From Auanema rhodensis (taxonomy: Eukaryota; Animalia; Nematoda): a stretch of 64,000 nt of DNA. Below, piece by piece: positions 21,982 to 59,675 of this stretch. Where the stretch lies: NCBI GenBank assembly GCA_964057225.1, contig OZ059895.1, positions 12,152,001 through 12,216,000 on the forward strand, in the 5' to 3' direction. The notes under the pieces are model-generated. The model searched no databases. It was given only the letters and a program-made list of their open reading frames with translations, and was not told the origin of the DNA. The position numbers and the translations under genes are program-made. The stretch's first letter is position 1. Every line of letters begins with the position of its first letter.

Positions 21982-22049
21982 GCTTACGACCATACCACGT
22001 TGAAAGTACGCCATCCCGTCCGATCTGGCAAGTCAAGCAACGTTGGGCC
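21982..22049 (+). pseudogene. 5' half (nt 1-68) of the 5S gene interrupted by element B; ends in TSD GGGCC 22045-22049
   Basis: 5S sequence stops at ...CAACGTTGGGCC and resumes at 31995 with GGGCCCGGTTAG. Confidence 0.96.
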
Positions 22050-22387
22050 TGTCGCTTGACAAACTGGACTTTTACCTCCAAGTATCAGTCCAAGTATGGA
22101 GTCGGTTCGTATGAGTGCGGTATTATGCGTTAAGACAAGTTAAATGAAGAAAGGTTTATTCAATAAATGCAACAACAGTAAAGTGAACAAGTGGATTGAT
22201 TCTAGAAATTCCAAGAAATCCTAAAATCAATACAAAATTGGTGAGACATGAGTTTTTTCCATCTGGTTCTCCCTTTTATAGGGAGGCACCAGATGGATCA
22301 AGGGGAGGAGAATGTTTTTGCGAGACAAAGTAAGAATGAGTGAAAATCAGTATGAAACTTACATATTCTTTCACGTCGACCGTGACA
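22050..22387 (-). repeat. 3' LTR of element B
   Basis: TGTCGCTTGAC...GACCGTGACA; no difference found from 31657-31994; minus-strand TATAAAA 22274-22280 and AATAAA 22155-22160. Confidence 0.97.
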
Positions 22388-22395
22388 GTCCGCGC

Positions 22396-22881
22396 CTAAA
22401 GTCTTCTTTTTTTGTTTGCTGAGCAGAGAGCAGAATGATGATCCGTTCCTTGACAGCGACTGCAGGTTATGTTGCAGTCGTCCATGTGCGCGGGGGCCAA
22501 GCATTTCACACAGATTCTTAGATGGTTACATCTAAGTGATCTGTGGTGGGCAGTTGGATATACTGGACAGTTGAACGAGCGATGGCCGTCGGCAGGAGTT
22601 GATTCACAGAATACGCATGAGTTAGGGTTCTTTAGGTTGGCAAGATTGTTGGTATTGTTGAGGAGAAGCTGCGATTGCAAATAGAGTTGATCAATCTTTG
22701 CGTTTAGTTGCTCCAGAGCAGCTTCAATGTTGGACGCACGAAGACGACTCTTTTCTTCAAGAATAATAATATGCTTCAGTTTTAGCGGTTCGCTTGGAAG
22801 CTGCTCCATATTTGAAAGCTTCAAATCATCGATGATTGATAGGAGGTTATCGTTCATTCTGACCGAAGTAGGTTCGGTCAT
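22396..22881 (-). CDS. Accessory sense ORF of element B: coiled coil plus triple zinc knuckle plus basic C-terminus (161 aa from ATG)
   Basis: CVFC-x7-H-x4-C, CVKC-x4-H-x3-C, CSRC-x4-HH-x3-C, ending KKRRL. TACTTCAG acceptor-like site 15 nt before the ATG; stop 8 nt before the 3' LTR; homologue in element C. Confidence 0.85.
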   Translation of the reverse strand: MTEPTSVRMNDNLLSIIDDLKLSNMEQLPSEPLKLKHIIILEEKSRLRASNIEAALEQLNAKIDQLYLQSQLLLNNTNNLANLKNPNSCVFCESTPADGHRSFNCPVYPTAHHRSLRCNHLRICVKCLAPAHMDDCNITCSRCQGTDHHSALCSANKKRRL

Positions 22882-23020
22882 AATGATCGTCCGCAACTGA
22901 AGTATTTGTAAAATTTATCTCTATTTATACTAGATTTTTGTACCTCCCCCTTGAATTTTTCTTTTGTTTTCTTTAGATTCAAAAAAAAAATTTTTTTTTT
23001 TATAGTTGTAGTTGTTGCAG

Positions 23021-23410
23021 ATGTCACAAATACAGTATCAGATGGAAGAAGACGAGCTCGGTCCATATGAATTATGCGATCGATGTAAGGCTCAGGACAC
23101 TCATCGTATACGGGAAGGCCCGGTAAGCTTATTGTTTTTTATTTATTTATTATATATTTTTTTTTTTTTTTTTTTTTTTTTATCTCAGTATTGTTGCAGA
23201 TGACGGACGATGAGCTTTATCCGGAGGATGGAGTTGAGCCAACTCGGGAGCAGCTCATCTACATGTTCTCGAGGATGCCGTTGCCTCCCAACTGCAGATT
23301 CTGCAGGGCAAAGAACCCCCGCCACCACGAACGTGAGGAGGTAAGCTTATATATTTTAACTGTGAATGTAAGTATTCTTGCAGATCTCAGACGATGATAG
23401 TGAGGGGTAA
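23021..23410 (+). CDS. Spliced antisense gene of element B; exons 23021-23122, 23200-23340, 23384-23410; 89-aa acidic protein with two CxxC motifs
   Basis: Phase-0 introns GTAAGC...TTGCAG of 77 and 43 nt; AATAAA at 23516-23521; frame and splice sites conserved in element C with mostly synonymous changes. Confidence 0.82.
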
Positions 23411-23575
23411 CTTGTAACTTCAAATATATAGTGTTTTTGTTTTGTTTTGTTTTTTTTTTTGTTTTTTTTTTTTTTTTTTTTTTTAAGTGTTTATAAATTG
23501 TTCTTATAGCTAATTAATAAAGTTTTTTTTTTTTTTTTTTTTTTTTTTTATTATTACTACAGTAAGATTAGTGTT

Positions 23576-25096
23576 TTAATTTTTATTTGTGCTAGACTCA
23601 GCTCTGTGTCTAGGATTTCTGAGCATTTTTCTCATTAATGATGTAATTATCATCACAATTTTTATTATCTGAATGATTAGTTTTTGTATGCTTATGATTA
23701 TTATAATGATTGTTTGTACCCCTATTATATAAGATAATACTGGTATAAAAACAGTCATCAGGAGTAAGCATATTGATAATGCCCAGTTTGTTTTAACTAC
23801 ATTTAGAATGTTTCTCCAGGTGTTAGCATTTGTCACAATGTTCATGATTGTTTTTTCAACGTCTGGAATTTCACTATCCCATTGTAAGGTTCCTTGTATG
23901 ATCATGCGGTGTTTTTCATTGGCACATGTTACAAAGCATTCTTCATAGATTTCAGAATTCTCTGAGTAATATTCCACAGCTGTAAGTGGCATGTGTGGAG
24001 CGCATTCAATCATGTATATGTTCTCACTACATTGCATTGTGATCCAAGACTCCTTTTGTGATATACACATGAACTCGGCAACAGCCGTTCTTCTGCAGCT
24101 GTGACACCCGGAAAGTTTTTTAAATTCCGGTCGACAAGGAAAGTCGTACAGGAAGGTACGAGACGACACATTCCCTTGTAGTTGAAGAACAACAGTTGAT
24201 TCATCAGTTTGAGGAATAAGTGTTAATTTGTTTTCTTTCATGGTAATTAGGGTGTTCTTGGTGTTCATGGGTAATAAGTTTGCCTGATTGAAAATATTAT
24301 CAGATGGACAGGTACATGTTAGCTCTTCCCTTTTTGAAATTTTGCAGTTGCACAACCTCAGTATTTTACAAGAGTTAAATTCATTTGTAGTTTGATATTT
24401 GGTTTTGCATGCTACTTCACTCATAGTATGAGGTTCCATGTAATAACTGTTTATGGTTGACAATGCATATTTGGTGTTCAAATATCGGGTTGGTGGCACA
24501 ATATGGGAGATTGAGCTTATATTAAAGTTTGGAAAATTAACAGTGTCGTATGGTTTTAAAAGAATATTAATATTGGCTTTGTGTTTAAATAGATCATATT
24601 TTACCTCTAATGGTATATTTATTTCCCAAGAATCACATTCTACTATTTCATAAACTATTTCATTGATTGGTTTAAACTCAGTTTGATAGATTGAGCAACC
24701 GTCTTCAAGAGACCAACATCCGCAGAAAAGAGAGCCACATCGCCTAGCACAACCAACTTGTGTTGGTCCTTCTTTTTTATCAAATTCTTGTAATTGTCCA
24801 ATAGGATTTATAGCTTCACAAGTGTGATTACAAGATCCTGATCCATAACAGGAATATTGAGTTTTGTATTGAATTGTGCTTTCTCGAGTATAATATAGCG
24901 TACTTTTCTGGCAAATGTATTCTGTTGGTTTTTTCGTTATTTCTATTTTGCCGATAGATTTATTTTGGTAAATGAATTCTAAGCAAGCGTCTCTTATGCC
25001 TTTATTGAAAATGATTTCATTATCGTATTCTTGATAACAATTTGTTCGATTAATGCAAATTATATTTATTGAATGCTTAATATGTGAGTTTGAACA
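23576..25096 (-). other. Phlebovirus Gc (G2)-like class II fusion glycoprotein domain
   Basis: Starts CSNSH after a signal-like stretch (LSIALMVLLITVES); fusion-loop-like CGSLFCGCWSLEDGC (24695-24739) resembles phlebovirus CGGWGCGCF; GCHSC motif; hydrophobic C-terminal anchor. Such env genes are known in nematode BEL/Pao elements. Confidence 0.85.
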
Positions 25097-28000
25097 AGAT
25101 TCCACTGTTATTAATAATACCATGAGTGCTATCGATAATTGTAATGAAGTGAATGATGATGTTCTCATGTAATTTGGAATTTTAATAGTTTCTGGAATAT
25201 CATTTTTCCATTTTGGAGTTACATTGTCAAACTTCGTGGTTACTGTGTTTTCCTTTTGTACGACTACATCGTCTGAACTTGTTAATCTTTTTGAATCAGG
25301 TTTTCCACTTCTAACTTCGGTTAGTATCGTTTGCCAATTATCATTTAAAAATTTATACCAATATTGGTCATTTTTATGAGCTTTCAATACTCTTTTACAA
25401 ATTGCTAATATAGTAAATAATAGTATAATTGGTATGAAAAATGTTATCAAAGTCGTTAATGGATTACATTGAGGGAAATATAATGCTTCCGCTGTTAGCA
25501 ATTCAGAGGATTGGCATGTAGCCTCAACTGTTGGAATTATCCCAAGAAGAGCTACTTTTGGAACAATCGTTTTCATTTTATTTTTCTTAAAATAACTTCT
25601 TACCGCTGCTTGACTACCTTGTGTTCTTGTTCTGAACCATCTATTTAGATTTGAAGGTTTGGATTCATTTTCGGTTTGAAGAGTTATCTCATTTGTTTGA
25701 TCTTTCTCTTGTTCTAAGTTCGTATTATTAGAATCATTTTCGTCTCCTGCGTCGTTGATGATATTCATGTTGGGTGTATAGATTTCGAGTGGTATTACAT
25801 TGTTACTTTGTTCACTTTCTTGAGTATTTTCAATAGTTTCAACATTTTCAACCCGATTTCCTTTTTGTGTTACCGTCCCGGTGATTAAAAATGGATTCAC
25901 TTGGTATTTTTTATTGTATCTCATTGAGTGAGGTTCTGACGCAAACGGTGCTGCTTCTGCGTTTCTCACTTCTAGTGGATATATGTGGTTTAATGAACGA
26001 GTTGTTATGAGACCAGTGCCAGTTATTAGTTTTGCAGATCTAACTTCCCCATCTGCACTTTTTATCAGTTCTATTATGCGTCCTAATTTCCATTTACCTC
26101 TACTTGAATTATCATTTTGTATTATAATAACTTCTCCTTCTTGTGGTTTCTTAGCATTCGTTGCAGGTTGTTTTCTGTTGTGTTTGTAAATATCTCTAAG
26201 ATAAAGTAAATACTCGGAATAGAATTTTTTCCAAAATAGTTGAGTTACATCGTTAGATAACTCTATTGCTTCAATGGCTTGCTCTATAGTTTGTATTGTC
26301 CTGCTATTGATAGTTTTATCATAAATTCGGGTATTCGATACGTTCGAAGAAAGTGTAAACCTGATGGAACGGTTTAAAAAATCACAAGGTCTGATAGGCA
26401 AAATGTTCAGGTTGGATGGGTTCGGATGTGTAAGCGGGCGAGTATTCAAAATTGTTTCGATTTTTACAATTACTGTATGTATATCATCAATTGACATTAA
26501 TCTATTTCCAATTGTTTTGTATAGTGCTAACTTTGTTAGTCCTACTAGTCTTTCCCATGTTCCACCTTTCCATGGAGCCTGTGGTGTGTTGAAGTACCAT
26601 TTAATATTCTTTTCGGCAAGATAATTGGTTAATGTTTTTTCATTTTTAGATTCATGGTTTTCTGTGTAAAACTCTATTACTTTAGCACTTAATAAGAAAT
26701 TTCCTCCATTATCGCTTCGTATTATTTCTGGAATACCTCTTCTTCCAATGAACCTTTCGAAAGCGTTTAAGAATGCTTTTGTTGATTGGTCAAAAACTAT
26801 TTCTAAGTGTATAGCTCTTATAGCTAAACAAGTAAACAGACATATAAATATCTTTTTGCCATCCTTTATGGTTATTGGACCTAATAAGTCACAACCTGTA
26901 CTCATGAATGGTTTTGTTAGAATTACTCTATCCTTAGGCAATGCTGGCATTAAGGACGTTCCAAACGGCAAAGCGTTGTATCTATTGCAGATTGTGCATG
27001 TTTTGAGAACTGATCTGACTATGCTTGATGGTTTACTTAAAAAGTATTTTTGACGCAAAAGTGTTAGAACAAAATCTCTCCCTTGGTGCATGCATTCTCT
27101 GTGTAAATGCATAATTATGTGTTCTGTGTACGGAGAATCCCTTGGAAGATATATGGGATTTTGAGTTTCAAACGGTAATTCCGAGTTGTTCAATCTACTA
27201 CGAACTCTGATTATTTCTTCATCGAGAAAAAATACAAAACCTTCATGTTTTTTCGTGAGGAGATCTATTGTTACATGCTGTTGTGCTTTACTTATTAGTA
27301 GTTTGGTTATAATCTCAATATCATTAGCTGTAGTTTGCCAGTTTTCATCTAATTGCATTACCTTATTTAACCTTGTTATAGCTGTGGGATGTACTTTTAT
27401 GATCCAATGTCTCAAGAATTTACTTAATTTAACTATAGTTTTCAGTAAGGTATAGTTGTTGCTACGTAATTTAAATATATCTTCAACTGGTATTTGTGTT
27501 ATTTGTTGTTGTTCAACGGTATCGATCAAGGTTGTTATATTCCAAATAGGCTCATATTCAATTTCTTCAATGTGTGATTTTGTTTGGGTTAACCATTGTG
27601 GTCCTTTAATCCACATAGAATCACTTAGTTCTTGGAGACAAGCTCTTCGAGAACCAATATCGGCTGGGTTATAATCACCATTCACATGAAAAAGTTTGAT
27701 TTTAATGTTACTTTCCTTCAATTTATCTATATACTTCCTTACATTGTCGACGCGACAGCCTACATATGGTGGTAAAGTTTTCTGATGGTTAGCTATCCAA
27801 TGTAAGGCTACCTTACTGTCACTGGCTACGTGTACAGTTTTAAGATGATTGGTTGTAGATGTGACATTATCAGCTAACATAATACCTAATAGTATGGCAA
27901 TGAGTTCTAGTCTTGGGATAGTCAGATTTCCCTTCTTTGCAATTTTCGACTTTCCGCTTACAAGTTGGCTTATTTTACCATTGGTTTCAATGTATGTGCA

Positions 28001-31000
28001 GGCAGCAATGGCTAGTTTACTAGCATCCGTAAATACCCATAATATAGAGTCATTCAGGTTTAACTTTCTTTCAAGTCTCAATTCCTTTTCATTTAATAAT
28101 TCATTTATAGCTAAATTCCATTTATGTGTTATTTCTTTGGGTAATTCTACATCCCAACCCTTGAATTGATCACTTGATTCTCTTAGTAGTAATTTTAATG
28201 GTAAAATCAATGGGCTTGCCATACCTAATGGATCGAATATTGAATGTATTTGACTTAACATGTTCCTGTGCGTGTTGATTTCAAATTTCTTTAATTTAAG
28301 TATAAGAACGAATAAATCTAATTTTGTATCATAATTTAAACCCAAAATTTTGGTAGTATTATGTGGGTATTTGTCTTCATTGTTCATATCTTCAGTAACT
28401 TTTGGATTGTTGCTCATAAATTCTCTTAAATTCATAGAAATGCCTTGTAAGATTTTCTTGGCTTTTTCGCATTTTATCTTAGCTTCTTCAACACTGTTTG
28501 CATATAAAATTATATTGTCAACATATAAGGAATCGAGCAAGTGACTAGCGTAAGGGTCGGTATGATTATTGAGGTACCAGGCTAAGCTCATGCTTAATAT
28601 ACCCGGGGACGCTGTTATACCAAATGGTAGCCGTTTGAATTGGTATGTCATGACGTTATATTTATTTACCGATTCATTTTCGTTTCTAATCCAGAAAAAT
28701 TTACAATATTTTCTGTGCTCTTCTTTAATACTTATTTGTAAAAATGCTGACTCAATGTCGCAGGTTATTATTATTGGACTTTTTCTACATTTTATTAATA
28801 TATCATGAATTTTGTGAATAAATGTTTGGCCTGAATGCATAACTTGGTTCAACGATGGACTATTTTTTTGTTTTGCTGAAGCATCAAACACGATTCTTAA
28901 AGGTCGAGCTTTTTCTTTTCTCCACACTCCATGATGTGGTAAGAAAAATCCATCTTCGGCTGATTCATCAACAATTGGCTCGATAATTCCCTTTTGAATG
29001 TATTCATTTATTAATTTTTTATACCATTCTAGTTGTTCTTTATTAGAGTGTAGATTTTTCCATAATGTCATGAATCTATGAAAAGCTGGCCATTTATTAT
29101 TTTTCAATTTATTCAAATAATTTTTAAATGGAAACGGAGCTTCAATTCTCCCGGCTTTAATGGATAGTTTTTTACTATATTCTTTAAGATAATTCTCTGC
29201 TTCTGCATTGTTATCTACTATGGTGCTTATTCCAATAGTATCGATAAGGAAAAGTTCTTTCAGTTTTGTTTCTGGAGGTGGTTCATGACTTTGTTCCTCT
29301 TCAATGCTACACAGAGTTACAATTTTTTCAAGTTTAGTTTCTCCATTTATAAGAGTTCCAAATACAGATCCTTTACATAAAAGATCAGAGGGAAGTCTGA
29401 ATTCTTCATTGTCTTTTACAAACAATTTTAATCTATCTTGTCCAATCAAAACATCCGGTTCAAAAACTTCCCCATTTGTATCGGTATTGGCTAATATAAT
29501 ATTATTTTCTTTAATGAAGCTCAAATCCTTTCTTGAAAGATAAGGACTATATATGTGGGAACTGATTTTTGGCTTAGTGAGCATTTCAGTTACAATTAAA
29601 TTTTTTTCTTTAGTATAGAATATTGTGTTTACTATACTTGAAACATGAGAATGTTTCATTCCTCCAATACCATGAAATGTTTTTCTTTGTTTGGATTTAA
29701 CTGGTAGTTTCATCCTTTTTGCTAGATCTTCTCTGATAAAAGATCGTTGAGAACAATCATCAAAAATAATGTTAACTTTCTCATAACTATCGCTATTGTA
29801 ATTGAACAAATTTGCTTTTGCTGTTCGTAAAATTATTTGGCCTTTTTCTACGTCATGATTACCAACAATTGTGGTTAAACTTGTGGGTTCTTCATGTGCT
29901 TTCTTTGGAATAATTGTTTGATTATTTCTGGTCTTTTCTTCATCATTACCCCTTTGTAAAGAAATGTTGGTGATGACTCCATTTCTATTCTGATTTCTTT
30001 TATTTTGGTAACAAACTGAAATGTTGTGATCATCATGACAGCTGTTGCATTTAAACTTTGGCCATGTGCAGTTTTTGCTTTGATGATTGTCTGCAAAGCA
30101 TACATAACATAGCCTTTTTTCTCTTAAAATTTTCCTTTTTTCCGTTGTTTCAATAGGACACATATGGCTATTGTGTGAATTGTTCGCGCAAAAAACGCAA
30201 TTCCTTCTTTGTTTCAAATCCTTAACTTCATTCAATCGAAATTGTTTTTTAGTTTGATCACCATCTGGATTTTTACTTTTTTCATTGTTACTGAGATACA
30301 GTGATTCAGTGTTTTCAGTCATCTGTAGTAGTTTTACTTGCGCCGAAATATGTTCAATGATTTTCTCGTGGGACCATTCAAAATTTTGTTTGATGTGAAT
30401 ATCTTTGATTATTTCAAATGGGAATTTATTGAGTACGGTAGCAACATAAAGCTCTTTGGTTAAAGATCCTCCCGCCGCTTGAATCTGTCGCAGCAGAGCT
30501 TTTATCTCTCTTAGCGTTTGAGCACAACTATCGGCTCGTCTTGAAGCTTTTGGCACCTTATTCAACTTGTTGATCAGCGTTGCTGTATCAACAGCGTATG
30601 AGGAATATTCTTCCTTCAAACAATTTTTCATAAACTCATAGTTTTCTTCGGTACCGGGAATTCCCCTAAGAAGATATTCGGCTTCACCTGATAAGGACTC
30701 ACATAGGAAGTTCACTTTTTCACTTATAGAGAAAGATTCATTGTTATCAATCATTCTCATAAATCTATCCCAGAATAAAGGGAATTTTTCCGGAGTACCG
30801 TCAAAGGTTGGAGTTTTTAATACGGGTCTTTGCAGTATTTGGTTAATCAGTCTTACTTCATTAACATGCTGATCATGCACTACCTGATCGGGTAAACTGT
30901 TTTGTTTTTCTTGTACCTCGTTTGTACAATTTTCATATTCTTTTTCTTCTGTATATTCAACTCTTTCCCGAAGTTGTTGTAATTCAAGTTGTATTTCCAT

Positions 31001-31408
31001 ATCTTTGATTTTTTCTTTATTTTTATCAATAAGATTTTTTAAGAATATCAACTTGTCATTCAATTCCAGTATTATTAACGTGGCATTGCCACGGATGTCT
31101 CCTTTCTCACCTTCTTCGAATTTTGTAAATTTTTTGTTTAATTCTTTTTGGTGCTCTTCTTCTAAAAGCTCACAAACTCTTTGAAAATTAATTTCAATGG
31201 TTTCAATTGATTGGAGTTTATTCTCCAAAATATTCAAGTAATTTTTAACTCTTGCACATTCATTCTCTTGCGCAATAATTTGATTTACCGGCTCAGACAA
31301 TTCTGAGTAATCGGTCATTTTCTTATAGTTTTCAACTTTAGAATTCAGTTTATTCAAAAATTCTAATTCTCTCCCCATTTGGAGAATATATCTTTGAGCG
31401 GAGGACAT
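23576..31408 (-). CDS. Gag-Pol-Env polyprotein of element B (2610 aa from the first ATG)
   Basis: Gag PTFDGTPEKFPLFW plus three zinc knuckles; protease IIFDDCSQRSFI; RT LYVDNI; RNase H VFTDAS; integrase HHCC plus DLLGP / SDNGGNF / WERLVG; GKWKLGRI domain; Cys-rich glycoprotein with C-terminal TM. Confidence 0.96.
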   Translation of the reverse strand: MSSAQRYILQMGRELEFLNKLNSKVENYKKMTDYSELSEPVNQIIAQENECARVKNYLNILENKLQSIETIEINFQRVCELLEEEHQKELNKKFTKFEEGEKGDIRGNATLIILELNDKLIFLKNLIDKNKEKIKDMEIQLELQQLRERVEYTEEKEYENCTNEVQEKQNSLPDQVVHDQHVNEVRLINQILQRPVLKTPTFDGTPEKFPLFWDRFMRMIDNNESFSISEKVNFLCESLSGEAEYLLRGIPGTEENYEFMKNCLKEEYSSYAVDTATLINKLNKVPKASRRADSCAQTLREIKALLRQIQAAGGSLTKELYVATVLNKFPFEIIKDIHIKQNFEWSHEKIIEHISAQVKLLQMTENTESLYLSNNEKSKNPDGDQTKKQFRLNEVKDLKQRRNCVFCANNSHNSHMCPIETTEKRKILREKRLCYVCFADNHQSKNCTWPKFKCNSCHDDHNISVCYQNKRNQNRNGVITNISLQRGNDEEKTRNNQTIIPKKAHEEPTSLTTIVGNHDVEKGQIILRTAKANLFNYNSDSYEKVNIIFDDCSQRSFIREDLAKRMKLPVKSKQRKTFHGIGGMKHSHVSSIVNTIFYTKEKNLIVTEMLTKPKISSHIYSPYLSRKDLSFIKENNIILANTDTNGEVFEPDVLIGQDRLKLFVKDNEEFRLPSDLLCKGSVFGTLINGETKLEKIVTLCSIEEEQSHEPPPETKLKELFLIDTIGISTIVDNNAEAENYLKEYSKKLSIKAGRIEAPFPFKNYLNKLKNNKWPAFHRFMTLWKNLHSNKEQLEWYKKLINEYIQKGIIEPIVDESAEDGFFLPHHGVWRKEKARPLRIVFDASAKQKNSPSLNQVMHSGQTFIHKIHDILIKCRKSPIIITCDIESAFLQISIKEEHRKYCKFFWIRNENESVNKYNVMTYQFKRLPFGITASPGILSMSLAWYLNNHTDPYASHLLDSLYVDNIILYANSVEEAKIKCEKAKKILQGISMNLREFMSNNPKVTEDMNNEDKYPHNTTKILGLNYDTKLDLFVLILKLKKFEINTHRNMLSQIHSIFDPLGMASPLILPLKLLLRESSDQFKGWDVELPKEITHKWNLAINELLNEKELRLERKLNLNDSILWVFTDASKLAIAACTYIETNGKISQLVSGKSKIAKKGNLTIPRLELIAILLGIMLADNVTSTTNHLKTVHVASDSKVALHWIANHQKTLPPYVGCRVDNVRKYIDKLKESNIKIKLFHVNGDYNPADIGSRRACLQELSDSMWIKGPQWLTQTKSHIEEIEYEPIWNITTLIDTVEQQQITQIPVEDIFKLRSNNYTLLKTIVKLSKFLRHWIIKVHPTAITRLNKVMQLDENWQTTANDIEIITKLLISKAQQHVTIDLLTKKHEGFVFFLDEEIIRVRSRLNNSELPFETQNPIYLPRDSPYTEHIIMHLHRECMHQGRDFVLTLLRQKYFLSKPSSIVRSVLKTCTICNRYNALPFGTSLMPALPKDRVILTKPFMSTGCDLLGPITIKDGKKIFICLFTCLAIRAIHLEIVFDQSTKAFLNAFERFIGRRGIPEIIRSDNGGNFLLSAKVIEFYTENHESKNEKTLTNYLAEKNIKWYFNTPQAPWKGGTWERLVGLTKLALYKTIGNRLMSIDDIHTVIVKIETILNTRPLTHPNPSNLNILPIRPCDFLNRSIRFTLSSNVSNTRIYDKTINSRTIQTIEQAIEAIELSNDVTQLFWKKFYSEYLLYLRDIYKHNRKQPATNAKKPQEGEVIIIQNDNSSRGKWKLGRIIELIKSADGEVRSAKLITGTGLITTRSLNHIYPLEVRNAEAAPFASEPHSMRYNKKYQVNPFLITGTVTQKGNRVENVETIENTQESEQSNNVIPLEIYTPNMNIINDAGDENDSNNTNLEQEKDQTNEITLQTENESKPSNLNRWFRTRTQGSQAAVRSYFKKNKMKTIVPKVALLGIIPTVEATCQSSELLTAEALYFPQCNPLTTLITFFIPIILLFTILAICKRVLKAHKNDQYWYKFLNDNWQTILTEVRSGKPDSKRLTSSDDVVVQKENTVTTKFDNVTPKWKNDIPETIKIPNYMRTSSFTSLQLSIALMVLLITVESCSNSHIKHSINIICINRTNCYQEYDNEIIFNKGIRDACLEFIYQNKSIGKIEITKKPTEYICQKSTLYYTRESTIQYKTQYSCYGSGSCNHTCEAINPIGQLQEFDKKEGPTQVGCARRCGSLFCGCWSLEDGCSIYQTEFKPINEIVYEIVECDSWEINIPLEVKYDLFKHKANINILLKPYDTVNFPNFNISSISHIVPPTRYLNTKYALSTINSYYMEPHTMSEVACKTKYQTTNEFNSCKILRLCNCKISKREELTCTCPSDNIFNQANLLPMNTKNTLITMKENKLTLIPQTDESTVVLQLQGNVSSRTFLYDFPCRPEFKKLSGCHSCRRTAVAEFMCISQKESWITMQCSENIYMIECAPHMPLTAVEYYSENSEIYEECFVTCANEKHRMIIQGTLQWDSEIPDVEKTIMNIVTNANTWRNILNVVKTNWALSICLLLMTVFIPVLSYIIGVQTIIIIIISIQKLIIQIIKIVMIITSLMRKMLRNPRHRAESSTNKN

Positions 31409-31508
31409 TATTTTAGCCTTCCTCAATGGATATTTCAGATTCAGCGATATTTTTATCGTCTTATTGTTTCTTGACAAGTAATTTCTTGTCAACTCGGATT
31501 TTCTACGA

Positions 31509-31601
31509 GTTCTTCGGAATTTTATTTCTCCGGCGGTTCTATATAACCTTTAACACAGTGTTCTTCGGAATTTATTTCTCCGGCGGTTCTATATAACCTT
31601 T
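31509..31601. repeat. Two-copy direct repeat of about 42 bp in the element B 5' leader
   Basis: GTTCTTCGGAAT(T)TTATTTCTCCGGCGGTTCTATATAACCTTT at 31509-31551 and 31560-31601. Confidence 0.9.
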
Positions 31602-31637
31602 GTTTTAAACTTTCCTTATCAGTAAGCAACTGAATTA

Positions 31638-31654
31638 TCCTGCCGTGGTCGCCA
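31638..31654 (-). promoter_or_regulatory. Primer-binding site of element B, tRNA-Arg type
   Basis: Minus strand TGGCGACCACGGCAGGA 2 nt after the 5' LTR; complementary to the ...TCCTGCCGTGGTCGCCA 3' end of nematode tRNA-Arg as I recall it. Confidence 0.85.
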
Positions 31655-31656
31655 AA

Positions 31657-31994
31657 TGTCGCTTGACAAACTGGACTTTTACCTCCAAGTATCAGTCCAA
31701 GTATGGAGTCGGTTCGTATGAGTGCGGTATTATGCGTTAAGACAAGTTAAATGAAGAAAGGTTTATTCAATAAATGCAACAACAGTAAAGTGAACAAGTG
31801 GATTGATTCTAGAAATTCCAAGAAATCCTAAAATCAATACAAAATTGGTGAGACATGAGTTTTTTCCATCTGGTTCTCCCTTTTATAGGGAGGCACCAGA
31901 TGGATCAAGGGGAGGAGAATGTTTTTGCGAGACAAAGTAAGAATGAGTGAAAATCAGTATGAAACTTACATATTCTTTCACGTCGACCGTGACA
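31657..31994 (-). repeat. 5' LTR of element B
   Basis: 338 bp, matches 22050-22387; adjacent to the PBS. Confidence 0.97.
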
Positions 31995-32050
31995 GGGCCC
32001 GGTTAGTACTTGGATCGTAGACGGCTTGGGAATCCCGGGTCCCGTAAGCT
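31995..32050 (+). pseudogene. 3' half (nt 64-119) of the 5S gene interrupted by element B
   Basis: Begins with duplicated GGGCC then CGGTTAGTACTTGG...CGTAAGCT. Confidence 0.95.
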
Positions 32051-41000: not shown

Positions 41001-44000
41001 TGGCAAGTCAAGCAACGTTTGGGCCCGGTCAGTACTTGGATCGGAGACGGCTTGGGAATCCCGGGTGCCGTAAGCTTTTCAAATTTTTTTAACGATCATG
41101 CCACGTTGAAAGAACGCCATGCAGCTGATTTTCAATTTTATCTCTTCCGTAACAAATGTTTTTAATTTTCCAGCAGTTTTACTTAGATAGCTCAACCCAA
41201 GGCATCAAAATATCTTCAATCTTATTTCTATATTACAGTTATAAACCAGTAGTTTATGAACCTTAATCTTAACTTTACTGTTTCTTTCTATTTCCTATTG
41301 AAACAAACAATGTTTTAACACTATACAACTGTGAAACCTTTTTTAATTTATTGTGTTTGGAGCTCATAAGATTCAATATCATCGAGGGATTTAGATGTAA
41401 CGTAGAAAATTACATAACTAACATGAAATTGGAAAAAAAACAATAACGAGGATAAGTATGTAAATCATTGAATATCAGATATTTCCGCTTACGACCATAC
41501 CACGTTGAAAGTACGCCATGCAGCTGATTTTCAATTTTATCTCTTCCGTAACAAATGTTTTCAATTTTCCAGCAGTTTTACTTAGATAGCTCAACCCAAC
41601 GCATCAAAATATCTTCAATCTTATTTCTTTATTACAGTTAAAAACCAGTAGTTTATGAACCTTAATCTTAACTTTACTGTTTCTATCTATTTCCTATTAA
41701 AACAAACGTTGTTTAAACACTATAGAACTGTGAAACCTTTTTTAATTTATTGTATTTGGAGCTCATAAGATTTGATATCATCGAGGGATTTAGATGTTAC
41801 GTAGAAAATTACATAACTAACATGAAATTGGAAAAAAAACAATAACGAGGATAAGTATGTAAATCATTGAATATCAGGTATTTTCGCTTACGACCATACC
41901 ACGTTGAAAGTACGCCATCCCGTCCGATCTGGCAAGTCAAGCAACGTTGGACCCTGTTAGTACTTGGATCGGAGACGGCTTGGGAATCCCGGGTGCCGTA
42001 AGCTTTTCAAATTTTTTTAACGATCATGCCACGTTGAAAGAACGCCATGCAGCTGATTTTCAATTTTATCTCTTCCGTAACAAATGTTTTTAATTTTCCA
42101 GCAGTTTTACTTAGATAGCTCAACCCAAGGCATCAAAATATCTTCAATCTTATTTCTATATTACAGTTATAAACCAGTAGTTTATGAACCTTAATCTTAA
42201 CTTTACTGTTTCTATCTATTTCCTATTGAAACAAACAATGTTTTAACACTATACAACTGTGAAACCTTTTTTAATTTATTGTATTTGGAGCTCATAAGAT
42301 TCAATATCATCGAGGGATTTAGATGTAACGTAGAAAATTACATAACTAACATGAAATTGGAAAAAAAACAATAACGAGGATAAGTATGTAAATCATTGAA
42401 TATCAGATATTTCCGCTTACGACCATACCACGTTGAAAATACGCCATGCAGCTGATTTTCAATTTTATCTCTTCCGTAACAAATGTTTTCAATTTTCCAG
42501 CAGTTTTACTTAGATAGCTCAACCCAACGCATCAAAATATCTTCAATCTTATTTCTTTATTACAGTTAAAAACCAGTAGTTTATGAACCTTCATCTTAAC
42601 TTCACTGTTTCTATCTATTTCCTATTAAAACAAACGTTGTTTAAACACTATAGAACTGTGAAACCTTTTTTAATTTATTGTATTTGGAGCTCATAAGATT
42701 TGATATCATCGAGGAATTTAGATGTAACGTAGAAAATTACATAACTAACATGAAATTGGGAAAAAAACAATAACGAGGATAAGTATGTAAATCATTGAAT
42801 ATCAGATATTTCCGCTTACGACCATACCACGTTGAAAGTACGCCATGCAGCTGATTTTCAATTTTATCTCTTCCGTAACAAATGTTTTTAATTTTCCAGC
42901 AGTTTTACTTAGATAGCTAAACCGAAGGCATCAAAATATCTTCAATCCTATTTCTATATTACATTTATAAACCAGTAGTTCATGAACCTTCATCTTAACT
43001 TTACTGTTTCTATCTATTTCCTATTGAAACAAACAATGTTTTAACACTATACAACTGTGAAACCTTTTTTAATTTATTGTATTTGGAGCTCATAAGATTT
43101 GATATCATCGAGGGATTTAGATGTAACGTAGAAAATTACATAACTAACATGAAATTGGAAAAAAAACAATAACGAGGATAAGTATGTAAATCATTGAATA
43201 TCAGATATTTCCGCTTACGACCATACCACGTTGAAAGTACGCCATGCAGCTGATTTTCAATTTTATCTCTTCCGTAACAAATGTTTTTAATTTTCCAGCA
43301 GTTTTACTTAGATAGCTCAACCCAAGGCATCAAAATATCTTCAATCTTATTTCTATATTACAGTTATAAACCAGTAGTTTATGAACCTTAATCTTAACTT
43401 TACTGTTTCTATCTATTTCCTATTGAAACAAACAATGTTTTAACGCTATACAACTGTGAAACCTTTTTTAATTTATTGTATTTGGAGCTCATAAGATTCA
43501 ATATCATCGAGGGATTTAGATGTAACGTAGAAAATTACATAACTAACATGAAATTGGAAAAAAAACAATAACGAGGATAAGTATGTAAATCATTGAATAT
43601 CAGATATTTCCGCTTACGACCATACCACGTTGAAAGTACGCCATGCAGCTGATTTTCAATTTTATCTCTTCCGTAACAAATGTTTTTAATTTTCCAGCAG
43701 TTTTACTTAGATAGCTAAACCGAAGGCATCAAAATATCTTCAATCCTATTTCTATATTACATTTATAAACCAGTAGTTCATGAACCTTCATCTTAACTTT
43801 ACTGTTTCTATCTATTTCCTATTGAAACAAACAATGTTTTAACACTATACAACTGTGAAACCTTTTTTAATTTATTGTATTTGGAGCTCATAAGATTTGA
43901 TATCATCGAGGGATTTAGATGTAACGTAGAAAATTACATAACTAACATGAAATTGGAAAAAAAACAATAACGAGGATAAGTATGTAAATCATTGAATATC

Positions 44001-47000
44001 AGATATTTCCGCTTACGACCATACCACGTTGAAAGTACGCCATGCAGCTGATTTTCAATTTTATCTCTTCCGTAACAAATGTTTTTAATTTTCCAGCAGT
44101 TTTACTTAGATAGCTCAACCCAAGGCATCAAAAAATCTTCAATCTTATTTCTATATTACAGTTATAAACCAGTAGTTTATGAACCTTAATCTTAACTTTA
44201 CTGTTTCTATCTATTTCCTATTAAAACAAACGTTGTTTAAACACTATACAACTGTGAAACCTTTTTTAATTTATTGTATTTGGAGCTCATAAGATTTGAT
44301 ATCATCGAGGGATTTAGATGTTACGTAGAAAATTACATAACTAACATGAAATTGGAAAAAAACAATAACGAGGATAAGTATGTAAATCATTGAATATCAG
44401 GTATTTTCGCTTACGACCATACCACGTTGAAAGTACGCCATCCCGTCCGATCTGGCAAGTCAAGCAACGTTGGGCCCTGTTAGTACTTGGATCGGAGACG
44501 GCTTGGGAATCCCGGGTGCCGTAAGCTTTTCAAATTTTTTTAACGATCATGCCACGTTGAAAGAACGCCATGCAGCTGATTTTCAATTTTATCTCTTCCG
44601 TAACAAATGTTTTTAATTTTCCAGCAGTTTTACTTAGATAGCTCAACCCAAGGCATCAAAATATCTTCAATCTTATTTCTATATTACAGTTATAAACCAG
44701 TAGTTTATGAACCTTAATCTTAACTTTACTGTTTCTTTCTATTTCCTATTGAAACAAACAATGTTTTAACACTATACAACTGTGAAACCTTTTTTAATTT
44801 ATTGTGTTTGGAGCTCATAAGATTCAATATCATCGAGGGATTTAGATGTAACGTAGAAAATTACATAACTAACATGAAATTGGAAAAAAAACAATAACGA
44901 GGATAAGTATGTAAATCATTGAATATCAGATATTTCCGCTTACGACCATACCACGTTGAAAGTACGCCATGCAGCTGATTTTCAATTTTATCTCTTCCGT
45001 AACAAATGTTTTCAATTTTCCAGCAGTTTTACTTAGATAGCTCAACCCAACGCATCAAAATATCTTCAATCTTATTTCTTTATTACAGTTAAAAACCAGT
45101 AGTTTATGAACCTTCATCTTAACTTCACTGTTTCTATCTATTTCCTATTAAAACAAACGTTGTTTAAACACTATAGAACTGTGAAACCTTTTTTAATTTA
45201 TTGTATTTGGAGCTCATAAGATTCAATATCATCGAGGGATTTAGATGTAACATAGAAAATTACATAACTAACATGAAATTGGAAAAAAAAACAATAACGA
45301 GGATAAGTATGTAAATCATTGAATATCAGATATTTTCGCTTACGACCATACCACGTTGAAAGTACGCCATCCCGTCCGATCTGGCAAGTCAAGCAACGTT
45401 TGGGCCCGGTCAGTACTTGGATCGGAGACGGCTTGGGAATCCCGGGTGCCGTAAGCTTTTCAATTTTTTTTAACGATCATACCACGTTGAGAGTACGCCA
45501 TGCAGCTGATTTTCAATTTTATCTCTTCCGTAACAAATGTTTTTAATTTTCCAGCAGTTTTACTTAGATAGCTCAACCCAAGGCATCAAAATATCTTCAA
45601 TCTTATTTCTATATTACAGTTATAAACCAGTAGTTTATGAACCTTAATCTTAACTTTACTGTTTCTATCTATTTCCTATTAAAACAAACGTTGTTTAAAC
45701 ACTATACAACTGTGAAACCTTTTTTAATTTATTTTAATTGGAAAAAAAACAATAACGAGGATAAGTATGTAAATCATTGAATATCAGGTATTTTCGCTTA
45801 CGACCATACCACGTTGAAAGTACGCCATGCAGCTGATTTTCAATTTTATCTCTTCCGTAACAAATGTTTTCAATTTTCCAGCAGTTTTACTTAGATAGCT
45901 CAACCCAAGGCATCAAAATATCTTCAATCTTATTTCTTTATTACAGTTAAAAACCAGTAGTTTATGAACCTTCATCTTAACTTCACTGTTTCTATCTATT
46001 TCCTATTAAAACAAACGTTGTTTAAACACTATACAACTGTGAAACCTTTTTCAATTTATTGTATTTGGAGCTCATAAGATTCAATATCATCGAGGGATTT
46101 AGATGTAACGTGGAAAATTACATAACTAACATGAAATTGGAAAAAAACAATAACGAGGATAAGTATGTAAATCATTGAATATCAGATATTTCCGCTTACG
46201 ACCATACCACGTTGAAAGTACGCCATGCAGCTGATTTTCAATTTTATCTCTTCCGTAACAAATGTTTTTAATTTTCCAGCAGTTTTACTTAGATAGCTCA
46301 ACCCAAGGCATCAAAATATCTTCAATCTTATTTCTATATTACAGTTATAAACCAGTAGTTTATGAACCTTAATCTTAACTTTACTGTTTCTATCTATTTC
46401 CTATTGAAACAAACAATGTTTTAACGCTATACAACTGTGAAACCTTTTTTAATTTATTGTATTTGGAGCTCATAAGATTCAATATCATCGAGGGATTTAG
46501 ATGTAACGTAGAAAATTACATAACTAACATGAAATTGGAAAAAAAACAATAACGAGGATAAGTATGTAAATCATTGAATATCAGATATTTCCGCTTACGA
46601 CCATACCACGTTGAAAGTACGCCATGCAGCTGATTTTCAATTTTATCTCTTCCGTAACAAATGTTTTCAATTTTCCAGCAGTTTTACTTAGATAGCTCAA
46701 CCCAACGCATCAAAATATCTTCAATCTTATTTCTTTATTACAGTTAAAAACCAGTAGTTTATGAACCTTCATCTTAACTTCACTGTTTCTATCTATTTCC
46801 TATTAAAACAAACGTTGTTTAAACACTATAGAACTGTGAAACCTTTTTTAATTTATTGTATTTGGAGCTCATAAGATTTGATATCATCGAGGGATTTAGA
46901 TGTAACGTAGAAAATTACATAACTAACATGAAATTGGAAAAAAAAAATAACGAGGATAAGTATGTAAATCATTGAATATCAGGTATTTTCGCTTACGACC

Positions 47001-50000
47001 ATACCACGTTGAAAGTACGCCATCCCGTCCGATCTGGCAAGTCAAGCAACGTTGGGCCCTGTTAGTACTTGGATCGGAGACGGCTTGGGAATCCCGGGTG
47101 CCGTAAGCTTTTCAAATTTTTTTAACGATCATGCCACGTTGAAAGAACGCCATGCAGCTGATTTTCAATTTTATCTCTTCCGTAACAAATGTTTTTAATT
47201 TTCCAGCAGTTTTACTTAGATAGCTCAACCCAAGGCATCAAAATATCTTCAATCTTATTTCTATATTACAGTTATAAACCAGTAGTTTATGAACCTTAAT
47301 CTTAACTTTACTGTTTCTTTCTATTTCCTATTGAAACAAACAATGTTTTAACACTATACAACTGTGAAACCTTTTTTAATTTATTGTGTTTGGAGCTCAT
47401 AAGATTCAATATCATCGAGGGATTTAGATGTAACGTAGAAAATTACATAACTAACATGAAATTGGAAAAAAAACAATAACGAGGATAAGTATGTAAATCA
47501 TTGAATATCAGATATTTCCGCTTACGACCATACCACGTTGAAAGTACGCCATGCAGCTGATTTTCAATTTTATCTCTTCCGTAACAAATGTTTTCAATTT
47601 TCCAGCAGTTTTACTTAGATAGCTCAACCCAACGCATCAAAATATCTTCAATCTTATTTCTTTATTACAGTTAAAAACCAGTAGTTTATGAACCTTCATC
47701 TTAACTTCACTGTTTCTATCTATTTCCTATTAAAACAAACGTTGTTTAAACACTATAGAACTGTGAAACCTTTTTTAATTTATTGTATTTGGAGCTCATA
47801 AGATTCAATATCATCGAGGGATTTAGATGTAACATAGAAAATTACATAACTAACATGAAATTGGAAAAAAAAACAATAACGAGGATAAGTATGTAAATCA
47901 TTGAATATCAGATATTTTCGCTTACGACCATACCACGTTGAAAGTACGCCATCCCGTCCGATCTGGCAAGTCAAGCAACGTTTGGGCCCGGTCAGTACTT
48001 GGATCGGAGACGGCTTGGGAATCCCGGGTGCCGTAAGCTTTTCAATTTTTTTTAACGATCATACCACGTTGAGAGTACGCCATGCAGCTGATTTTCAATT
48101 TTATCTCTTCCGTAACAAATGTTTTTAATTTTCCAGCAGTTTTACTTAGATAGCTCAACCCAAGGCATCAAAATATCTTCAATCTTATTTCTATATTACA
48201 GTTATAAACCAGTAGTTTATGAACCTTAATCTTAACTTTACTGTTTCTATCTATTTCCTATTAAAACAAACGTTGTTTAAACACTATACAACTGTGAAAC
48301 CTTTTTTAATTTATTTTAATTGGAAAAAAAACAATAACGAGGATAAGTATGTAAATCATTGAATATCAGGTATTTTCGCTTACGACCATACCACGTTGAA
48401 AGTACGCCATGCAGCTGATTTTCAATTTTATCTCTTCCGTAACAAATGTTTTCAATTTTCCAGCAGTTTTACTTAGATAGCTCAACCCAAGGCATCAAAA
48501 TATCTTCAATCTTATTTCTTTATTACAGTTAAAAACCAGTAGTTTATGAACCTTCATCTTAACTTCACTGTTTCTATCTATTTCCTATTAAAACAAACGT
48601 TGTTTAAACACTATACAACTGTGAAACCTTTTTCAATTTATTGTATTTGGAGCTCATAAGATTCAATATCATCGAGGGATTTAGATGTAACGTGGAAAAT
48701 TACATAACTAACATGAAATTGGAAAAAAACAATAACGAGGATAAGTATGTAAATCATTGAATATCAGATATTTTCGCTTACGACCATACCACGTTGAAAG
48801 TACGCCATCCCGTCCGATCTGGCAAGTCAAGCAACGTTGGGCCCTGTTAGTACTTGGATCGGAGACGGCTTGGGAATCCCGGGTGCCGTAAGCTTTTCAA
48901 ATTTTTTTAACGATCATGCCACGTTGAAAGAACGCCATGCAGCTGATTTTCAATTTTATCTCTTCCGTAACAAATGTTTTTAATTTTCCAGCAGTTTTAC
49001 TTAGATAGCTCAACCCAAGGCATCAAAATATCTTCAATCTTATTTCTATATTACAGTTATAAACCAGTAGTTTATGAACCTTAATCTTAACTTTACTGTT
49101 TCTATCTATTTCCTATTGAAACAAACAATGTTTTAACACTATACAACTGTGAAACCTTTTTTAATTTATTGTGTTTGGAGCTCATAAGATTCAATATCAT
49201 CGAGGGATTTAGATGTAACGTAGAAAATTACATAACTAACATGAAATTGGAAAAAAAACAATAACGAGGATAAGTATGTAAATCATTGAATATCAGATAT
49301 TTCCGCTTACGACCATACCACGTTGAAAGTACGCCATGCAGCTGATTTTCAATTTTATCTCTTCCGTAACAAATGTTTTCAATTTTCCAGCAGTTTTACT
49401 TAGATAGCTCAACCCAACGCATCAAAATATCTTCAATCTTATTTCTTTATTACAGTTAAAAACCAGTAGTTTATGAACCTTCATCTTAACTTCACTGTTT
49501 CTATCTATTTCCTATTGAAACAAACGTTGTTTAAACACTATAGAACTGTGAAACCTTTTTTAATTTATTGTATTTGGAGCTCATAAGATTTGATATCATC
49601 GAGGGATTTAGATGTAACGTAGAAAATTACATAACTAACATGAAATTGGAAAAAAAACAATAACGAGGATAAGTATGTAAATCATTGAATATCAGATATT
49701 TCCGCTTACGACCATACCACGTTGAAAGTACGCCATGCAGCTGATTTTCAATTTTATCTCTTCCGTAACAAATGTTTTTAATTTTCCAGCAGTTTTACTT
49801 AGATAGCTAAACCGAAGGCATCAAAATATCTTCAATCTTATTTCTATATTACAGTTATAAACCAGTAGTTCATGAACCTTCATCTTAACTTTACTGTTTC
49901 TATCTATTTCCTATTGAAACAAACAATGTTTTAACACTATACAACTGTGAAACCTTTTTTAATTTATTGTATTTGGAGCTCATAAGATTCAATATCATTG

Positions 50001-50959
50001 AGGGATTTAGATGTAACATAGAAATTTACATAACTAACATGAAATTGGAAAAAAAAACAATAACGAGGATAAGTATGTAAATCATTGAATATCAGATATT
50101 TTCGCTTACGACCATACCACGTTGAAAGTACGCCATCCCGTCCGATCTGGCAAGTCAAGCAACGTTTGGGCCCGGTCAGTACTTGGATCGGAGACGGCTT
50201 GGGAATCCCGGGTGCCGTAAGCTTTTCATTTTTTTTTAACGATCATACCACGTTGAGAGTACGCCATGCAGCTGATTTTCAATTTTATCTCTTCCGTAAC
50301 AAATGTTTTTAATTTTCCAGCAGTTTTACTTAGATAGCTCAACCCAAGGCATCAAAATATCTTCAATCTTATTTCTATATTACAGTTATAAACCAGTAGT
50401 TTATGAACCTTAATCTTAACTTTACTGTTTCTATCTATTTCCTATTAAAACAAACGTTGTTTAAACACTATACAACTGTGAAACCTTTTTTAATTTATTT
50501 TAATTGGAAAAAAAACAATAACGAGGATAAGTATGTAAATCATTGAATATCAGGTATTTTCGCTTACGACCATACCACGTTGAAAGTACGCCATGCAGCT
50601 GATTTTCAATTTTATCTCTTCCGTAACAAATGTTTTCAATTTTCCAGCAGTTTTACTTAGATAGCTCAACCCAAGGCATCAAAATATCTTCAATCTTATT
50701 TCTTTATTACAGTTAAAAACCAGTAGTTTATGAACCTTCATCTTAACTTCACTGTTTCTATCTATTTCCTATTAAAACAAACGTTGTTTAAACACTATAC
50801 AACTGTGAAACCTTTTTTAATATATTGTATTTGGAGCTCATAAGATTCAATATCATCGAGGGATTTAGATGTAACGTGGAAAATTACATAACTAACATGA
50901 AATTGGAAAAAAACAATAACGAGGATAAGTATGTAAATCATTGAATATCAGATATTTTC

Positions 50960-51027
50960 GCTTACGACCATACCACGTTGAAAGTACGCCATCCCGTCCG
51001 ATCTGGCAAGTCAAGCAACGTTAGGCC
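50960..51027 (+). pseudogene. 5' half (nt 1-68, G64A) of the 5S gene interrupted by element C
   Basis: ...GTCAAGCAACGTTAGGCC directly followed by LTR start TGTCACGG. Confidence 0.93.
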
Positions 51028-51196
51028 TGTCACGGTCAACGTGAAAATACGAACTTTATTGTGTTAACGTTTTGTTTGTATTTTTTGTATTAACTTCACC
51101 CCCTTTAACCATCTGGTGCCTCCCTATAAAAGGGAGAACCAAATGGTTAAAATTTTCATGTCTCACCAATTTTGTATTGATTTTAGAATTTTCTTT
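51028..51196 (+). repeat. Partial 5' LTR of element C (U3, TATA, start of R)
   Basis: Starts TGTCACGGTCAACGTGAAA like the B LTR (TGTCACGGTCGACGTGAAA); shares the TATA hairpin and CATGTCTCACCAATTTTGTATTGATTTTAG. Confidence 0.9.
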
Positions 51197-58667: not shown

Positions 58668-58782
58668 AACACTAATCTTACTGTAGTAATAAAAAAAAAA
58701 AAAAAAAAACTTTATTAATTAGCTATAAGAACAGTTTAAAAACACAAAAAAAAAAAACAAAAACAAAAACAAAACAAAAACA

Positions 58783-59204
58783 CTATATACTTGAAATATC
58801 TGGATACCCCTCACCATCATCGTCTGACATCTACAACAATACTTACATTAACAGTTAAAATATATAAGCTTACCTCCTCACGTTCGTGGTGGCGGGGGTT
58901 CTTTGCCCTGCAGAATCTGCAGTTGGGAGGCAACGGCATCCTCTGGAACATGTAGATGAGCTGCTCCCGAGTTGGCTCGACTCCATCCTCCGGATAAAGC
59001 TCATCGTCTGTCATCTGCAACAATACTGAGATAAAATAAAATAAATTAATAAATAAATAAATAAAATAAAATAAAAAATAATAAGCTTACCGGGCCCTCC
59101 CGTATGCGATGAGTATCTTGCGCCTTGCATCGTTCGCATAGTTCATATGGACCGAGCTCGTCTTCTCCAATCTCCTCTTCAACCTGATACTGTAATTGTG
59201 ACAT
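58783..59204 (-). CDS. Spliced antisense gene of element C; exons 59204-59091, 59014-58874, 58830-58783; 100 aa
   Basis: MSQLQYQVEEEIGEDELGPYELCERCKAQDTHRIREGP | MTDDELYP...CRFCRAKNPRHHEREE | MSDDDGEGYPDISSI*; GTAAGC donors, TTGCAG and TTGTAG acceptors; minus-strand AATAAA 58711-58716. Confidence 0.8.
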
Positions 59205-59675
59205 CTGCAACAATTACAACTATAAAAATAAAAAATAAAAATAAAAAATTTTTGAATATAAAAAAAAAAAAAAAAAAAAAACAATAGAAAATGTCAAGAG
59301 GGAAGTACAAAAACTTCACGAATACAATAAAAATTAAATTACTAATCACACGTAGTACAATAGTAAAAAATATAAACAAAGCAAAAATAGGTTATAAAAT
59401 AATATAAACAAAGGAAAATCACTACATATAGAAACAAATGCAACAGTTATAAACAAACAAATCTTTTTATCAAGATCTTCAATCTTTGATAACATCAAGT
59501 TTATTTATCCGAATAATATACATAAAAAGTAATCCTTTGTACAGGCTTTTTATACATTGTATCCGTAAACACATACTATTCTACAATAAACTAAGGGACG
59601 TTTATCATAGGTCAACCCACAGATGCGAACAAATATATAAAGAGGGAAACCATTGTTTTTCTCAATTCAGTGCTA

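Follow-up and report, generated by a model that had tools for sequence, protein, structure and literature searches.

The stretch described here is a 64,000-nucleotide segment of the genome of the nematode Auanema rhodensis (GenBank assembly GCA_964057225.1, contig OZ059895.1, positions 12,152,001 to 12,216,000, forward strand), hereafter called the window, in which an array of 5S ribosomal RNA (rRNA) genes is interrupted by retroelements of the Bel/Pao type. Rfam identified 46 matches to 5S rRNA in the window. Forty-four of these are full length, 37 on the plus strand and 7 on the minus strand, and the remaining two, which start at 21982 and 50960, are cut short and lie on the plus strand. The basic unit of the array is 529 bp, with extra 399-bp sub-repeats in many of the spacers, and the G+C content is 57% in the 5S gene as compared with 28% in the spacer. 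Three long insertions, visible as blocks of differing strand composition, interrupt the array; we call them elements A, B and C (Table 1). B and C are copies of a single family, and each of them begins directly after nucleotide (nt) 68 of a 5S gene, which is the observation with which the present analysis is chiefly concerned.

Table 1. Positions of the elements, their parts and the 5S genes referred to in the text (LTR, long terminal repeat; ORF, open reading frame; PBS, primer-binding site).
Feature	Position	Strand	Basis
Element A, other Bel/Pao element, cut by the window start	1..5943	-	Pfam, protein comparison
A Gag-Pol gene, broken, runs past the window edge	1..5299	-	Pfam
5S left half split by B, nt 1-68; final 5 nt (22045-22049) are the left GGGCC copy	21982..22049	+	Rfam, sequence
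Element B, complete provirus-like copy, 9945 bp: LTR, PBS-like site, Gag-Pol-Env ORF, small ORF, LTR	22050..31994	-	each LTR terminus found twice
B 3' LTR, 338 bp, TG...CA	22050..22387	-	sequence comparison
B small ORF downstream of env: 166 codons, C-terminal half rich in Cys/His, stops 8 nt short of the 3' LTR	22396..22896	-	ORF caller
B Gag-Pol-Env ORF, 2638 codons without stop, first ATG at 31408	23576..31492	-	ORF caller, Pfam
B PBS-like 18-mer, begins TGG, 2 nt past the 5' LTR, occurs once in the window	31637..31654	-	sequence
B 5' LTR, 338 bp, contains TATAAAAGG motif	31657..31994	-	sequence comparison
5S right half split by B, nt 64-119; initial 5 nt are the right GGGCC copy	31995..32050	+	sequence
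5S left half split by C, nt 1-68, with a single change (G64A) that no other copy in the window has	50960..51027	+	Rfam, sequence
Element C, 9145 bp, defective member of the family of B, reversed versus B relative to 5S; LTR subtype unlike B	51028..60172	+	sequence comparison
C Gag-Pol-Env gene, broken; domain set of B in its two readable pieces	51072..58667	+	Pfam
C small ORF downstream of env: 155 codons, homologue of the B ORF, stops 9 nt short of the LTR stub	59670..60137	+	ORF and protein comparison
C 3' LTR stub, 26 nt, identical to the initial 26 nt of the C 5' LTR	60147..60172	+	sequence
Intact 5S gene, numbering reference (GGGCCC at nt 64-69)	60566..60684	+	Rfam, sequence comparison

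The insertion of B can be read from both of its flanks. The left flank (5S nt 1-68) has no mismatches to the intact copy and the right flank (nt 64-119) has two, and the pentamer GGGCC (nt 64-68) is present on both sides of the element as its target-site duplication. The two LTRs, with TG...CA ends, are identical at 338 of 338 positions. Because a G follows both LTR copies, there is an ambiguity of 1 nt, and a 4-bp duplication, GGCC, is formally possible; the 5-bp duplication is favored because it agrees with the TG...CA convention and because an A precedes the start of the second LTR of C. LTR ends of this kind, when they occur with a duplication of 5 bp, mark the action of a retroviral-type integrase. 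The possibility that the 5S halves are parts of the element itself, in the style of Cassandra and Ajax, was rejected, given that the LTR identity ends exactly at TG and CA and that the halves form one gene when the duplicated pentamer is allowed for. A sequence-only reading of this DNA had placed the start of B after nt 68, at 22049, and had equated the duplication with nt 64-68, and both the flanks and the LTRs agree with it. All of the coordinates in that reading hold, whereas the coding strands had to be corrected, to minus for B and plus for C. No break was found in B: its two LTRs are identical, a PBS-like 18-mer is present and no stop interrupts the Gag-Pol-Env frame. Given the LTR identity and the unbroken frame of 2638 codons, the family was active recently. 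The leader of B, between the PBS-like site and the coding frame, contains an imperfect tandem duplication of ~50 nt (31500-31610).

Element C adjoins nt 68 of a plus-strand 5S gene, and the LTR terminus found at this junction is the one that faces the right flank in B; C is therefore inserted in the orientation opposite to that of B. The sequence-only reading had likewise started C after nt 68, at 51027, and in the opposite orientation, in agreement with both the LTR terminus and the coding strand. At the other end of C, the LTR stub is joined directly to a 399-bp spacer sub-repeat, and the right half of the 5S gene is gone together with the duplication, whose absence had already been noted; a deletion here removed most of the 3' LTR along with the flank. 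Another deletion, near the 5' end, leaves C ~0.8 kb shorter than B in that region, without the last 60 nt of the LTR and without the PBS. The Gag-Pol-Env gene of C is broken by one premature stop and by no frameshifts, and it differs from B by a single in-frame length difference of 9 nt. These breaks and deletions, together with the unique substitution in the flank, indicate that C is the older, dead copy.

The coding content of B was examined with Pfam, which identified in its long frame, in this order, DUF1759 (Gag), RVT_1, Peptidase_A17, Integrase_H2C2, DUF5641 and Phlebovirus_G2, the last of these being a fusion domain matched with an E value of 3.4e-46. The order characteristic of Bel/Pao elements, namely DUF1759, reverse transcriptase, Peptidase_A17 and integrase (H2C2, core and DUF5641), is found in B, C and A, with the rve core seen in a piece of C at E 4.4e-6, below Pfam's own cut-off. 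The reverse transcriptase of B carries YVDN at residue 990, and YVDN is also present in A; this sequence, in place of YXDD, marks the nematode belpaoviruses (PMC9094657). Formally, Bel/Pao elements make up the Belpaoviridae, a family of metazoan viruses (PMC8742986). The best match of the B Env among solved structures is PDB 7a4a (E 2.9e-25), the Gc entry for Atlas virus, whose host is the hookworm Ancylostoma ceylanicum (PMC9094657), and bandavirus and phlebovirus Gc entries come next. Hydrophobic segments are located ahead of the Gc part and at the C-terminus. On the strength of the domain order, the YVDN sequence and the Env match to 7a4a, B is an Atlas-like belpaovirus with a phlebovirus Gc-like class II Env, and a distant member of that group. 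The identity of an enveloped Bel/Pao element, first proposed from the letters of the DNA, is thus borne out by the Pfam domain order, Phlebovirus_G2 and the 7a4a match. For the integrase-to-Env region, the best relatives among 5.8 billion proteins have at most 38% identity, and none of those proteins exceeds that value; among the hits that carry a name, the closest belong to plant- and animal-parasitic nematodes (Heterodera, Globodera, Meloidogyne and Anisakis), several of them with a G2 domain, and insects follow. Judged by these relatives, the host would probably be a nematode.

Downstream of env, B and C each carry a small ORF. The two ORFs are homologous (33% amino acid identity, E 3e-27), and no Pfam family was matched by either. 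The Cys/His-rich half shows a weak resemblance to the zinc-knuckle region of Gag. The unique 3' (U3) regions of the B and C LTRs align only at their termini and around the TATA motif. The sequence-only reading had ascribed to C a different U3 and a different accessory ORF; the former claim stands, but the latter does not, in view of the homology of the two small ORFs. As judged from their alignment, B and C thus share a core and carry different 3' modules. The small ORF and U3 together are a swapped 3' module, and the rest of B and C is 98% identical in DNA.

Element A belongs elsewhere. Its Gag-Pol is only 40% identical in amino acid sequence to that of B, and A is therefore assigned to a separate family and does not constitute a counter-example for the family of B and C. 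The Gag-Pol gene of A is broken at least once, by frameshift. The 5' end of the element lies in a spacer, and the 5S gene at 6003 follows 59 bp downstream. Within the terminal region of A, presumably its LTR, there is a (GA)n microsatellite of ~36 nt (5840-5875).

Both copies of the B/C family that the window contains (2/2) are located at the nt 68 bond, and they arose independently, as detailed below; the sample is n=2, and one of the two is flanked by 5S sequence on a single side. Neither solo LTRs nor orphan 5S halves of the family were found in the other 44 5S copies of the window. The duplicated pentamer GGGCC conforms to the symmetric sequence GGNCC and lies inside the hexamer GGGCCC, and by Xenopus numbering nt 64-68 would lie at the border between box A and the intermediate element of the internal promoter. 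With 46 equivalent bonds among the 38,966 bases of the array, a second random insertion into the array would strike this bond again with a chance of 1.2e-3. This value presumes all array positions to be equally likely, which is the weak point of the estimate, and it is in line with the "one in several hundred" suggested earlier.

One interpretation of these observations, which we prefer to any other single explanation although we would put it somewhat short of even odds, is that an integrase inserted B and C on separate occasions, that both belong to a young, envelope-carrying, Atlas-like family for which the 5S target is strongly preferred, and that the integrase reads the 5S sequence directly. 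According to this scheme, the integration complex would cut the 5S gene with a 5-bp stagger around nt 64-68, and the integrase would recognize directly the 5S sequence surrounding the symmetric core. A complex with two-fold symmetry would read a symmetric site alike from either side, and the provirus could then enter in either orientation at the same two bonds. The gene copy that is struck would be destroyed, a loss that the multicopy array would buffer. The integrase is nearly identical in B and C. A nucleic acid guide, such as a guide RNA, is unlikely, because there is no complementarity between the element and 5S beyond chance; the longest shared words are 9-mers, the same as with shuffled 5S.

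Several observations weigh against this interpretation. Within the 529-bp unit, GGNCC occurs only at nt 64 and 65, and GGGCC occurs within the array only inside 5S; the coincidence of B and C within the array therefore demands by itself the recognition of no more than ~5 bp. Retroviral-type integrases are usually weak in sequence preference. There are just two insertions, one with a single flank, and a specificity for 5S extending to the whole family would be an extrapolation from n=2. Finally, the third Bel/Pao element in the same 64 kb, A, sits outside the gene, a sign that the array may collect elements of this type to some extent in general. The earlier proposal of a 5S site-specific family is therefore partly supported, and holds as far as the common 5S bond of B and C is concerned; its extension to the family as a whole is less secure, with n=2 and with a preference for a short motif, combined with retention in the array, giving the same picture. 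We put at about 0.6 the probability that the B/C family is truly directed to 5S, whether by direct reading or by tethering to promoter-bound factors. The same value applies to the reading in its full form, namely that an uninterrupted, recently active, enveloped belpaovirus family inserts at a precise nucleotide position of the 5S gene (nt 64-68, inside the internal promoter) in either orientation, with a specificity borne by the integrase through the DNA or through the TFIIIA/TFIIIC-bound promoter, and that it would be the first LTR-class or retrovirus-like element to be strictly gene-internal in a multicopy RNA gene.

If the family is directed to 5S, then the question is whether the DNA or a protein bound to it is recognized. 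It is conceivable, though in our judgment unlikely, that the integrase or another protein of the element docks on TFIIIA/TFIIIC at the internal promoter, with the cut made a set number of bases away, in a manner comparable to that of Ty3 with TFIIIB at the start sites of RNA polymerase III (Pol III). By Xenopus numbering, the insertion site would lie inside the internal control region, which speaks for such a mechanism. Tethering to Pol III factors is also what all of the well-studied position-precise LTR elements employ (PMC5911963), but these known tethered elements insert beside the gene and not into a promoter occupied by the factor (PMC5911963). The distance of 59 bp that separates A from its 5S gene resembles that of TRE5 (PMC5911963) and would fit an attraction to Pol III genes throughout the lineage. 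The position of A, a single case, fits either such a wider attraction or simple retention in a tolerant array. A tethered complex would have no need for the exact symmetry of the pentamer. With respect to the element protein that might do the docking, Pfam detected no domain beyond the usual Bel/Pao integrase set, Bel/Pao integrases are not known to bear a sequence signature of contact with TFIIIB/TFIIIC, and the product of the small ORF is a poor candidate for a specificity factor because it is merely 33% identical in two elements that choose the same bond.

A different explanation, to which we likewise give a rather low probability, dispenses with 5S specificity. The integrase could prefer a symmetric, GC-rich GGNCC or GGGCCC sequence anywhere in the genome, as ZAM does with CGCGCg, and copies that land harmlessly in the 5S array would be retained, with most copies of the family residing outside 5S. 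The duplication is indeed a perfect GGNCC, a sequence that in the repeat unit is confined to the two positions named above, and two copies within the array would then coincide with a chance of ~1/2. ZAM provides a precedent for a motif-specific integrase in an LTR element (PMC2527525), and the window, with three Bel/Pao elements from two families, suggests that the array retains such insertions. However, GGNCC is expected about once per 1-2 kb genome-wide, as estimated from the window composition, and to find 2/2 copies in 5S would require a very large copy number or a very strong retention bias. There are also 19 GGNCC sites within A, B and C without a nested copy, although this is weak evidence.

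The argument about site choice presupposes that B and C record two events. It could be objected that C arose from B, or both of them from one ancestral insertion, through duplication, inversion or gene conversion, or else that C is an assembly artefact of the repetitive array. Repetitive arrays are difficult to assemble, inverted 5S copies exist in this array, and C is rearranged at both ends. We nevertheless regard this possibility as very improbable. The orientation relative to 5S is reversed, with the coding strand minus in B and plus in C, although the left 5S flanks of both elements are plus-strand nt 1-68. Duplication, unequal exchange or gene conversion of B into C was rejected, as each would keep the orientation relative to 5S. 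Inversion of B, which the sequence-only reading had itself named as an outcome that would undo its proposal, would place the reverse complement of nt 64-119 beside the C LTR; the flank is nt 1-68 and reads sense nt 48-68 at the junction, and inversion was rejected. C carries its own LTR subtype at both of its ends, the initial 26 nt being identical between them, and this subtype differs from that of B. The B/C core can be aligned over 6818 nt without gaps at 98.2% identity, and its 125 differences comprise 65.5 synonymous and 58.5 non-synonymous changes, for a ratio of non-synonymous to synonymous rates (dN/dS) of 0.22, which departs from neutrality with a binomial p of 4.5e-16. B and C therefore diverged for the most part as replicating lineages under selection and not by decay in place after insertion. 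Because of the opposite orientation, the reading of the C flank, the divergence of LTR subtype and 3' module, and the dN/dS value, B and C are independent insertions and not array-amplified copies, as had been claimed at the outset, and they are not products of inversion or conversion either.

The weakest explanation, that two unrelated insertions into a tolerant array fell on the same bond by coincidence, is hardly credible, for the chance is 1.2e-3 once both insertions fall in the array and much smaller across the genome, both copies are of the same family and the target is symmetric, even if the window was chosen for its odd look and some selection of coincidences is thereby built in.

Some features of the array itself deserve mention. 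The 399-bp spacer sub-repeats open with a copy of approximately the first 30 nt of 5S and occur in runs of up to 8 (6137-21900 and 32066-50900). The seven inverted 5S genes lie within 9.9-21.8 kb, in a higher-order arrangement with a spacing of 787 bp. Among the 44 intact 5S copies, variable positions concentrate at the insertion site (nt 65, 66, 67 and 70), with 4 of 7 positions variable at nt 64-70 as compared with 16 of the 112 positions outside this interval (Fisher p 0.015 in a post hoc test), and changes at nt 64-70 are present in 21 of the 44 genes. This variability could reflect escape from insertion, or merely variants amplified within the array.

The closest relatives in coding content are Atlas virus and the other nematode belpaoviruses (Ancylostoma ceylanicum; PMC9094657; 10.64898/2026.03.22.711591), which, like B, encode a single Gag-Pol-Env polyprotein (2828 amino acids in Atlas virus and 2638 in B). 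B also shares with Atlas virus the YVDN reverse transcriptase, the Gc-like Env and a pair of LTRs that are 100% identical to each other. Unlike Atlas virus, B and C carry the extra small Cys/His-rich ORF after env, and the sequences are distant. Neither an insertion-site preference nor 5S is mentioned for Atlas virus in PMC9094657 or 10.64898/2026.03.22.711591. If the 5S preference is real, it would show, for nematode Atlas viruses, a genomic location and a way of sparing the host, a topic that lies outside both of these papers.

With respect to targeting, Ty3, Tj1, DGLT-A and the other Pol III-directed LTR elements resemble the B/C family in inserting at Pol III genes, including 5S, with near-nucleotide precision and in either orientation (PMC5911963). 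They differ from it in that their insertions lie 1-33 bp upstream or just downstream and leave the gene intact (PMC5911963), whereas B and C are not a few base pairs from the Pol III start or just outside the gene but at +64 to +68, and destroy it. The elements of the Ty3/Tj1/DGLT-A type are also of the Ty3/gypsy or Ty1/copia lineages and not Bel/Pao. ZAM, an env-carrying errantivirus of Drosophila, has an integrase that itself binds and selects the short, symmetric, GC-rich CGCGCg (PMC2527525), which resembles the GGNCC/GGGCCC core. As in ZAM, a short symmetric GC-rich target becomes the duplication in B, where GGGCC fits GGNCC. ZAM is of the Ty3/gypsy lineage, and its targets are sites scattered over the genome, as opposed to a multicopy RNA gene.

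Life in ribosomal gene arrays is a strategy that the B/C family would share with R2, Pokey and Galadriel (PMC10946416), although these target 28S or 18S and not 5S, and all but Galadriel are elements of other classes (PMC10946416). At the time of PMC3706591, strict target specificity was known only in non-LTR retrotransposons; for multicopy RNA genes, it has been described in non-LTR retrotransposons and in Dada DNA transposons (PMC3706591, PMC8869645). The 5S entries of a 2024 review of ribosomal DNA and transposable elements consist of Mutsu inside the gene, unspecified spacer elements and the 5S-derived Cassandra and Ajax, with no Bel/Pao element. In the literature covered, which leaves out most subscription journals, we came across no LTR element, of the Bel/Pao type or any other, with a reported target inside 5S. 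The two copies at one bond suggest, from two cases only, a gene-internal, site-specific integration that has so far been undescribed for LTR elements. If this is true, a natural example would be at hand of high-precision target choice by the family of integrases that retroviruses use.

The nearest parallels in the choice of target are the non-LTR element Mutsu (PMC5340908) and the DNA transposon Dada-5S (PMC8869645), which also insert at a fixed place in 5S, a multicopy safe target. Mutsu and Dada-5S rest on many copies, and the B/C family on two. The Mutsu site is ~20 nt from the 5' end of the 5S gene, whereas that of B and C is at nt 64-68. Mutsu and Dada-5S use target-primed reverse transcription or a transposase, in contrast to the retroviral-type integrase of B and C, and an integrase of this type that picks one bond of the 5S gene would represent a third, independent route to the safe-harbour strategy. 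In Mutsu, too, differences between 5S types coincide with the target site (PMC5340908), as the variable positions at nt 64-70 do here, and this variation, if it is real, would be a hint that array and element compete, as has been proposed for Mutsu in zebrafish (PMC5340908).

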